This document shows, piece by piece, positions 60,137 to 62,759 of a stretch of 64,000 nucleotides of DNA. Every line of letters begins with the position of its first letter. Within the stretch, counting starts at the first letter, position 1. Position numbers and translations under genes: made by a program. A model generated the notes under the pieces. That model searched no databases. It saw nothing but the letters and a program-made list of their open reading frames with translations, and had not been told where the DNA came from. The DNA lies in the NCBI GenBank assembly GCA_964057225.1, contig OZ059894.1, positions 14,880,001 through 14,944,000 of the forward strand, read 5' to 3'. Source of the DNA: Auanema rhodensis. Lineage: Eukaryota; Animalia; Nematoda.

Positions 60137-60428
60137 AACTATGACTTGCTTTACGCACGGACCAAGAAGCATTTTAAACTTGAACTATATCATTCTACAT
60201 TAAAAAATATGAACGTATATATTATTTTATACAGTTAATTTTGATTTTTACATAATTCTTAATTTTAATAATACATTAAAAATTGTTTCTTAAGTTATAA
60301 ACCTTGTAAGCAGCACAGCGCCGTTATATGTGAATTTCACCGACAAATCTCACTTGAGAGAGGGCAATCCGTTCGGGACCAATATTATACAGCTCTCTCG
60401 TTCATATTTAAGAGAAGTGGAATTTCAT
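60137..60428 (-). repeat. Diverged duplicated non-coding element, copy A (between ZFPL1 3' end and nuo-5)
   Basis: Aligns in direct orientation to 62474-62759; shared blocks include TTTATACAGTTAATTTT, AATACATTAAAAAT, TCACC.ACAAATC, GGGCAATC.GTTC.GGACCAATATT. Confidence 0.88.
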
Positions 60429-60653
60429 ATTCATCTTTTCATACAAGTATAAATATATTATTTCATTATTACGTTTTTGTGTTCTGTGATAATTCTTTTT
60501 CAAATAAATATATAACATTTGTCACGGCACTTCGGAAATTATTTAATATAATAATACTTCACAGCCAATTACCCAGGTTTGTACAGCAGAAAGTTATCAC
60601 AGATAATATTGTCATAAATCATAAATATTATAAGCAAAAAAGTTGTCGAAAGA

Positions 60654-62448
60654 CTACAAATGGTTCGACATGATATCTTCAGCTGCAACTCTAATATTTG
60701 GATTTGCCATAGGATCCAATAGAGGATCATACTCAGATGATACACCAACTCTGGATAGGACAGTATAAATAGTGAATAGAATAAGAACTACAAATATAAT
60801 TAAAACGAAAAGTTTTTTCTGGCCCGATAAACGACTTGGAGCAGAATTTCCATATTTAGCCCTAAATGACAATAATAATTATATATGAAATAAATTTGAA
60901 TTTACCTCCACAGTCCACCAAGCCATTCTTGCACAGGTCGTCTTTTGTACTTATTCGCTTCACTATCCACATCTCTTTCCGACGAAAGAAGAGGACGAGT
61001 ATCACTAGCACCACCCGCAAACTTTTTTCTTGCTGATTTTTCAGATAAGCATTATGTTAGAAAATATAAAGAAACCTGTGAATGTTACTTCTTCATTTGA
61101 GTTCGAGAAATGAGCATCTTCCATTTCCAAAGCAGTAGCAGGAGTAGACATTCTGAATGTCGGAATGAATATTTATAAAAAAACAAAGTCTCTACCTTAA
61201 GTTATTTGGTGTTGGTGCTCCATATACTTGTTGATTAGATGGAGCATGGTATGTTTTTTCTGTTTCAATGCTACTTTGATTTATTGCATTAGATGAATTC
61301 TTCTCTGAGTTTGCAACGAGTGCTGCATATGGTACAGCAATTTTGTTTAATTCGGGTAACTAAAAAACAGAATTAACTAAGATTGACACAGCTCGAAACT
61401 AACAACTGGAAGGCCAAGCCCGGCTCGAGCCCAATTAGCTCGCTCCAGAAAAGATCGCAAATGGTCAATAACCCGAGAAACCTGGTTGGAGTTCGGGAAA
61501 AGAGTTTCCCTGAAACCAAGTAAATATAAGTCTGTTTCATTATGAATCTAACCTGCAACATGGGCAATAATATCCAGCGGGGGCTGTAGTAGCAGGAAAC
61601 CTACTAGCCCATGCATCAAGACATGACCAATGTAATACGTCTAAAAATATGATTTTGAGAATATTTTAATTCACATGTTTTTTTTTGTTTGGCAAAACTA
61701 GGATGAGAGAAAAAGCATCGTTTTTAAAAGTAAACAGTTTTATTAAAATTAGTACTAAAGCATTCTCATGTTGACATAAATACTAAACAGCAAAAAGATT
61801 ATCGTGTAAATTATAAAATACAAAGAATAGTATAAAAATTAAGCTTCATCTGTAGACATTGATTAAACCACAACATGAAGAAAAACAAGATTACACATTC
61901 ACGAAGATTATTTTAGATATCAAACTTGATCATAACATTAAAAATAGAATGTATATTACACTGTTTTAGCACTCAATCTAGAACTTTTTTTCCATTTGAT
62001 TGAAGTATTGAAAAAAGGTGCTTCAGAATTTTAAAATAATTTCAACTAAATAGAGTACTTTGCTATGTATGGAAAAATTGTTAACCTTTTTTCTACTATT
62101 TTGTAGTTTAATCATAACATTTTACCACTATTTGAAACTTTCTCAAATTTTAACATTGCATAGCTTTTTTTCAATGAAAAATACTTACGTAAGCATTGCA
62201 GACGAACGGTTTCAGCAGCAGATAGGGAGTTTTCGCATAAGGTACAGTTAGAATCAAAATCTGAATCAGTTAACCATTGCAAATAACTTTGAACAACACA
62301 CTGAAATCATAAAGTATAAGTTCTTGTTCAACTTGATCCAACTTACGCTGGCATGATTTTCTACCAAACAGTCCTCACACACATTGACACGATGTTCAAA
62401 ACAAAATAAATTAGTAACTTTCTTTTTTGGACATTTACATAATCCCAT
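60654..62448 (-). CDS. ZFPL1: Zinc finger protein-like 1 (ZFPL1) homologue, Golgi membrane B-box/RING-like protein
   Basis: [50 protein letters not shown]..., [37 protein letters not shown]-terminal TM and [14 protein letters not shown]. Confidence 0.95.
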
Positions 62449-62473
62449 CTATAATTATAAATTTAATAATAGA

Positions 62474-62759
62474 AACTATAACCATTTATGCATTTAAGTG
62501 AGAGGCATTTTTAAATGTATTTATCTTATTTTATGAAATAACACAGGCGTATATGTTAGTTTATACAGTTAATTTTTATTTTTACATAACTTTTAATTCT
62601 AACAATACATTAAAAATCGTTTCTCAGGCTTTAAGCCCTGTAGACACAACGTTGATGTTTGAGAAACTCACCAACAAATCAGCCTTCAGCGTGGGCAATC
62701 GGTTCAGGACCAATATTCTCCAACCCCCTCATTTAGATTTAAGGAAAATTGAGTTTCAT
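62474..62759 (-). repeat. Diverged duplicated non-coding element, copy B (immediately upstream of ZFPL1)
   Basis: Direct-repeat partner of 60137-60428; similarity is strongest over 62548-62759 and weaker to within ~25 bp of the ZFPL1 start. Confidence 0.88.

Follow-up and report, generated by a model that had tools for sequence, protein, structure and literature searches.

The nematode Auanema rhodensis carries the 5' end of its ZFPL1 gene twice within a stretch of 64,000 nucleotides (nt) of contig OZ059894.1 (assembly GCA_964057225.1, positions 14,880,001 to 14,944,000 of the forward strand), which is here called the window and in which all coordinates are counted from the first letter. One copy (copy B) contains the intact first coding exon of ZFPL1, while the other (copy A) is located between the 3' end of ZFPL1 and the start of the next gene on the minus strand, nuo-5, and contains a disabled version of the same exon. 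The two copies have diverged unevenly: the exon remnant has decayed, but a GC-rich box and an AT-rich block are well preserved, and the box recurs in front of housekeeping genes elsewhere in the genome. It is probable, judging from these features, that the duplicated 5' end of ZFPL1, with promoter, leader and exon 1, has been co-opted for nuo-5.

Extent and direction of the duplication

The first-pass annotation of the window had described two diverged direct copies at 60137-60428 and 62474-62759, each located 5' of a minus-strand gene. Both copies are present at these sites, upstream of nuo-5 and ZFPL1, respectively, and their whole core can be aligned with MAFFT, with an identity of 73-79% (by find_repeats, 79% between 60188-60308 and 62522-62642, and 73% between 60314-60428 and 62645-62759). 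However, the colinear similarity exceeds these limits and spans, in a permissive BLAST search and a Smith-Waterman alignment, the two intervals given in Table 1 (68% identity over 518 columns, BLAST E 3.7e-64). Past either end of these intervals no similarity is detectable, and the comparison is not significant upstream or in intron 1 and exon 2. Copy A begins at about the end of the ZFPL1 3' untranslated region (UTR) and finishes 140 nt short of the nuo-5 start codon. The genome-wide BLAST search suggested in the first-pass annotation found two copies only in the 181-Mb assembly, and the matches to a 30-mer core of the AT-rich block, with up to three mismatches, were also confined to copies A and B. 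The element is a local two-copy repeat and not a dispersed family.

While the core of the element was correctly delimited in the first-pass annotation, its continuation into coding sequence was missed. The alignment of the two copies runs on through a shared acceptor-like ATAG into coding exon 1 of ZFPL1, with ATAG followed by ATGGGATTATGT in copy B and by CTGAGATTTTGT in copy A. The exon can be followed in copy A over about 96 nt, in which indels occur and none of the three frames is free of stops. When the exon 1 remnant is aligned alone it scores 26, compared to a mean of 12.6 and a maximum of 22 for dinucleotide shuffles, none of which reaches the observed score (0/1000). Since copy A holds a disabled ZFPL1 exon 1, the copied unit is the ZFPL1 5' end, and copy A was derived from copy B. 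In all likelihood, the pair thus represents a duplicated 5' end of ZFPL1, with the upstream region, the leader and exon 1.

The duplication is old and local. It covered about 0.5 kb and placed the upstream promoter region, the untranslated leader with its ATAG acceptor and nearly all of coding exon 1 just beyond the 3' end of ZFPL1. The copies are in direct orientation with a spacing of 2.33 kb, and the ZFPL1 gene unit has the same length. Two routes are therefore equally possible: either the 0.5-kb piece was inserted directly, or the whole unit was duplicated in tandem and the second gene body was lost afterwards. In either case the duplication is an event of an ordinary kind, and neither a novel type of RNA nor a novel system is involved.

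Uneven divergence and an oriented promoter box

The Jukes-Cantor (JC) divergence between the copies differs strongly by segment. It is 0.38 in the dead exon and 0.39-0.50 in other segments, but 0.13 in a 26-nt block around ATTGGTCCYGAACSGATTGCCC, which covers the box, and 0.11 in the 76-nt AT-rich block, where 68 of the 76 columns are identical (permutation p 0.0006). Both islands are thus 3-4 times less diverged than the dead exon, and the 69 columns that separate them have a divergence of 0.47. Because the exon in copy B is constrained by its coding function, most of the 0.38 arose in copy A, and the 0.11 of the AT-rich block, set against this value, means that copy A has changed less there than under neutral decay. 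The low divergence of the AT-rich block is due to either purifying selection or gene conversion.

Pattern searches of the whole genome identify the GC-rich island as a putative oriented promoter box of unrelated housekeeping genes. The box is bipartite and consists of ATTGGTCCYG, three free bases and CGAT(T/A). The 22-mer box with up to three mismatches has two additional near-matches in the genome (none for the reversed control), the 18-mer ATTGGTCCYGAMCSGATT with up to two mismatches has 19 matches (three for the control), and the form with three free bases, ATTGGTCCYGNNNSGAT, has 17 exact matches (one for the control). The box is rare, with about 15 strict instances genome-wide, and 12 same-strand gene starts are located downstream of it, at +131 to +507, the orientation being constant (Table 1). 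Pfam backs the identity of five of these genes, two of them above the curated cut-off, while the remainder were assigned by eye. Except for the box, the other promoters have nothing in common with the element, and they are not homologous among themselves. Copy A is the sole box-bearing sequence upstream of nuo-5. The ANANNA string (AUAAUA/AGAAUA) that the first-pass annotation had placed after its first hairpin is present, but it forms the 5' flank of the promoter box, which had been overlooked. A locally duplicated promoter, which the same annotation had listed as an alternative, is in turn supported by the dead exon 1 in copy A and by the oriented box, which copy A has in common with the promoters of unrelated housekeeping genes. 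The box matched no described factor, and a text search of the literature for the box core returned primer sequences only.

A few further observations concern the box. The rps-17 and rpl-10 promoters contain CTCTTTC about 10-75 nt after the box (in rps-17 at about 1470-1490 of the locus, on the minus strand, and in rpl-10 at about 1590-1600, with the box at about 1501). This string is similar to the polypyrimidine (TCT) initiator known from ribosomal-protein genes and would put the start site just past the box. On contig 8, two boxes in the same orientation are located 3.5 kb apart (14091897 and 14095361, both minus), one in front of V-ATPase B and the other in front of an open reading frame (ORF) without assignment; this pair was considered as a second duplicated promoter and rejected, as the flanks are non-homologous. 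The box on contig 5 (8639332-8639348, minus) has a single recognisable neighbour, an eIF3b-like gene that is encoded on the opposite strand at a distance of 102 nt, and this instance is either an exception to the orientation rule or a bidirectional promoter. A tRNA-like RNA polymerase III promoter or extra-TFIIIC site with a GGTTCGANNCC B box was rejected as well, since the B-box-like letters on the opposite strand are the variable three bases of the box and ARAGORN found none. Copies A and B lack GGTTCGA, an A-box-like GTGG...AGTGG (which differs from the canonical TRGCNNAGTGG), and the ACGTG and CGGTTG boxes of a cassette resembling an initiator plus downstream promoter element.

The AT-rich island is specific to the A/B pair in the 30-mer search of the genome and in metagenome searches. 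On the gene strand of both copies it contains TTATGTAA and, 17 nt on, TATAAA; we take the former to resemble a bZIP site and the latter a TATA box, and together they fit a core or proximal promoter. A box C/D small nucleolar RNA (snoRNA) in this block was considered by eye and rejected, there being no conserved C or D box. A conserved GATTTGTYGGTGA block is located between the box and the AT-rich island and contains a candidate 5' splice donor, weaker in copy A than in copy B, which makes a 5'-UTR intron possible in place of an outron. Whichever of the two applies, the leader would be excised at the acceptor that immediately precedes the respective ATG, in ZFPL1 as in nuo-5.

Table 1. Features of the duplicated ZFPL1 5' end in the window and genes located downstream of the box in the genome. 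Box-linked genes are given by their distance from the box.
Feature	Position	Strand	Evidence or remark
Copy B, source: ZFPL1 upstream region, leader, acceptor and coding exon 1	62353..62848	-	Colinear alignment with copy A
Copy A, derived: between ZFPL1 3' end and nuo-5 start	60016..60518	-	Colinear alignment with copy B
Box, canonical form ATTGGTCCTGAACCGATTGCCC, copy B	62693..62714	-	Genome pattern searches
Box, copy A	60362..60383	-	GGAT instead of CGAT
AT-rich block, copy A	60215..60290	-	Alignment; TTATGTAA 60255-60248, TATAAA 60231-60226, stem H4
AT-rich block, copy B	62549..62624	-	Alignment; TTATGTAA 62589-62582, TATAAA 62565-62560
Candidate 5' splice donor, copy A	60335..60340	-	CG/GTGAAA, within GATTTGTYGGTGA; alignment only
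Candidate 5' splice donor, copy B	62671-62666	-	TTG/GTGAGT; alignment only
Stems of the first-pass annotation, copy A	60263..60416	-	H1 60393-60416, H2 60320-60344, H3 60292-60304, H4 60263-60281
Live ZFPL1 coding exon 1	62347..62448	-	ATG 62448-62446; acceptor-like ATAG directly 5'
Dead ZFPL1 exon 1 in copy A	60016..60110	-	CTG 60110-60108 where copy B has ATG
ZFPL1 stop codon	60654..60656	-	3' UTR with AATAAT/ATTAAA-like signals ends near copy A start
nuo-5 start	59874..59882	-	ORF; acceptor TTCAG, one A, ATG (59876-59874)
ZFPL1	box +266	box strand	Exon and Pfam identification
nuo-5	box +507	box strand	Pfam on downstream exons
rps-17	box +318	box strand	Pfam S17e 2.5e-26
rpl-10	box +329	box strand	Pfam L16 1.9e-12
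rpl-31	box +317	box strand	Weak Pfam match, short exon
G-alpha q	box +178	box strand	Weak Pfam match, short exon
DP	box +172/+606	box strand	Weak Pfam match, short exon
RRP5-like	box +131	box strand	By eye
RRM protein	box +169	box strand	By eye
V-ATPase B	box +294	box strand	By eye
AMPK-beta-like	box +256	box strand	By eye
eIF3c-like	box +239	box strand	By eye

Promoter, relic or structured RNA

The exon in copy A is dead but the box and the AT-rich block have been kept, which suggests that copy A most likely works as DNA. It would act as an RNA polymerase II promoter and leader that were taken over by nuo-5. Copy B is still the working 5' end of ZFPL1. Trans- or cis-splicing at the TTCAG just before the ATG would remove the nuo-5 leader together with the dead exon. 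The duplication and its direction, the pseudo-exon, the recurrence and orientation of the box and the uneven divergence are established from the sequence; we infer from them a promoter activity of copy A, the position of the start site and the splicing route, and copy A may well be the active nuo-5 promoter. Several points weigh against the promoter role. The low divergence of the box is not significant alone, with three differences in 26 columns, and copy A has a G in the box where 16 of the 16 gene-linked instances have a C, which may have weakened it. The AT-rich block is unique to the pair, so that its role as promoter DNA is putative. Gene conversion with copy B could be the source of the low-divergence islands, and nuo-5 could be transcribed from the ZFPL1 promoter as the downstream gene of an operon. 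Finally, there is a modest excess of conserved hairpins on the gene strand, which a purely DNA-level function leaves unexplained.

The possibilities of conversion and co-transcription come together if copy A has no function and is what remains of a partial or tandem duplication of ZFPL1, its islands being short conversion tracts from copy B and nuo-5 being expressed from elsewhere, for example together with ZFPL1. This would agree with the full decay of the exon 1 remnant and with the non-canonical G in the copy A box, and copies that lie 2.3 kb apart in direct orientation permit conversion. The adjacency of ZFPL1 and nuo-5 is compatible with an operon, and the homologue of ZFPL1 is presumably also adjacent to nuo-5 in C. 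elegans. However, islands with divergences of 0.11 and 0.13 on either side of columns at 0.47 require two independent conversions of similar age, and one of the islands is exactly the box that is independently linked to promoters. The distance from the ZFPL1 stop codon to the nuo-5 ATG, about 780 nt, is also long for a spliced leader 2 (SL2)-type operon, in which the intercistronic distance is about 100-150 nt in C. elegans. A dead relic thus seems rather unlikely.

The first-pass annotation had itself favoured selection on RNA structure, acting on four stems (H1-H4) found in both copies. The stems are indeed present on the minus strand, where they comprise 26 pairs; 51 of the 52 cells pair, the exception being a G-A mismatch in H2 of copy A. 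Three pairs have changed on both sides, as had been claimed, and the eight one-sided changes are all wobble-compatible (8/8). The statistical support is marginal, however, and the structured-RNA signal is suggestive at best. On the gene strand the structure conservation index is 0.53, compared to 0.38 ± 0.07 for column shuffles, 2.3% of which reach the observed value, and the alifold z is -2.15. A census of hairpins, defined as stems of at least 5 bp that pair in both copies and compared with column shuffles, found 12 conserved stems on this strand and, among these, four in which a pair had changed on both sides. In the shuffles the two counts average 4.9-7.7 and 0.64-0.76, and the fractions of shuffles reaching the observed counts are 0.0065-0.087 for the stems and 0.004-0.0075 for those with a double change. 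Several of the census stems are alternative registers of one AT palindrome or of H1. The opposite (plus) strand gives no signal in either the index or the census. Tests of covariation have no power with two sequences, and the shuffle control (57/500) cannot discriminate. Folding of the single sequences is ordinary (z -0.25 and -1.01), ARAGORN found nothing on the element, and the Rfam covariance models, named as a check in the first-pass annotation, had no match within copy A or B at E up to 10.

If these signals were to reflect selection, the gene-strand leader, be it an outron, a 5'-UTR intron or a separate non-coding RNA, would contain H2-H4, with or without H1, kept in both copies and serving, for example, to guide leader processing. 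The four stems with their double and wobble-compatible changes, the index and alifold values on the gene strand alone and the excess of the census over its shuffle means all point in this direction. Against them stand that there are two sequences only and that the stems were selected post hoc. H1 has (TC)n/(GA)n arms, the pairing of which survives nearly any transition, and it is located 5' of the promoter box and may hence be untranscribed, while H4 consists of A-U pairs only. Moreover, the folding of the single sequences is not unusual, the index is low in itself, Rfam gives no match, and the best-kept block is mostly unpaired in every model. We consider a selected RNA structure in the leader improbable, and the same holds for its more specific form, in which the 76-nt AT-rich island with H2-H4 would be a leader-borne RNA element under selection that controls leader processing and was moved from ZFPL1 to nuo-5 by the duplication. 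If true, the discarded leader would have a function of its own, and the pair would be a natural two-copy experiment.

Two further suggestions of the first-pass annotation fit the data poorly. An atypical H/ACA-like small RNA on the minus strand would be composed of H1, the ANANNA string, H2 and ACA, and both strings are present, AUAAUA/AGAAUA after H1 and ACA after H2. However, H1 and H2 are 24-25 nt long (7 bp and a loop of 10-11 nt) and have no internal pocket, where hairpins of roughly 50-70 nt with a pseudouridylation pocket are expected, and in place of a short hinge about 45 unpaired nt, including the promoter box, separate the would-be H box from H2. The ACA, which should follow the second hairpin immediately, is located 13 nt past H2, and neither copy has an H/ACA match in Rfam. 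Hairpin size, pocket, hinge, ACA position and Rfam thus all speak against this proposal, which is very improbable. An origin from a transposon, such as a miniature inverted-repeat transposable element, a Helitron or similar, accounts for the existence of a repeat and for nothing further. The two copies are local and the only ones in 181 Mb, no terminal inverted repeats flank them, and one of them includes a host coding exon 1 at its native site, all of which makes such an origin extremely unlikely. Compared to these alternatives, the co-option of a duplicated ZFPL1 promoter by nuo-5 remains our preferred explanation.

Gene neighbourhood and relation to known systems

The exons of ZFPL1 and nuo-5 were searched singly, by reference. 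ZFPL1 is read from a minus-strand ORF that starts at 62448, with exon 1 intact, and matches Pfam zf-B_box (E 6.7e-05). In Angiostrongylus and Heterorhabditis, the proteins matched by the last exon carry the name 'Zinc finger protein-like 1 homolog', and the relatives of this exon in a representative protein search, from Ancylostoma, Angiostrongylus and Heterorhabditis, have just 47-57% identity, which is too distant for a non-coding comparison. Metagenome scans with the last ZFPL1 exon and with the 30-mer of the AT-rich block gave no match. The minus-strand gene that starts at 59876 has a presequence-like N-terminus, and its downstream exons match Pfam Fer4_Nqo3 (1.7e-33) and NADH-G_4Fe-4S_3 (2.3e-17); these domains identify the predicted product as NDUFS1, a subunit of complex I, the gene for which is named nuo-5 in C. 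elegans.

Upstream of ZFPL1, a plus-strand gene with Kelch repeats is located +4.8 to +5.5 kb past the end of the window and diverges from ZFPL1, with which it shares an intergenic region of roughly 1-1.5 kb. A weak covariance-model match to SNORA12 (63001-63128, minus; 16.8 bits, E 5.5) is located upstream of copy B. Its score is far under the gathering score, and it is probably due to chance.

The pair is a clean natural example of promoter acquisition, in which the putative regulatory islands have been kept and the coding remnant has decayed. If copy A is active, the downstream gene would have gained in one step a promoter of its own and the housekeeping logic of its neighbour, a case that is relevant to the break-up of nematode operons and to the gain of promoters inside them. 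The comparison also defines, as a by-product, an oriented bipartite box that appears to serve about a dozen genes for growth and housekeeping in the worm.

The element shares features with several known systems. Like a box H/ACA snoRNA, it has ANANNA and ACA strings after two small gene-strand stems, but it differs in hairpin size, pocket, spacing and ACA position, and has no covariance-model match. The AT-rich leader, with a distance from the box to the acceptor of about 230 nt in ZFPL1 and about 470 nt in nuo-5, is similar to a nematode outron or 5'-UTR intron, although an island of such low divergence would be unexpected in an ordinary discarded leader. The box is similar to the inverted CCAAT box (ATTGG) of NF-Y in being short and oriented, in its location 130-510 nt before the ATGs of genes for ribosomal proteins, translation factors and energy metabolism, and in the ATTGG in its left half. 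It differs in being longer, bipartite and rare. Internal promoters occur in nematode 'hybrid' operons. With respect to promoter duplication and capture, the present case differs in that the promoter activity of the derived copy is deduced from sequence, but it has the same arrangement: a local direct repeat of promoter, leader and first exon, in which the copy with the disabled exon immediately precedes the next same-strand gene.

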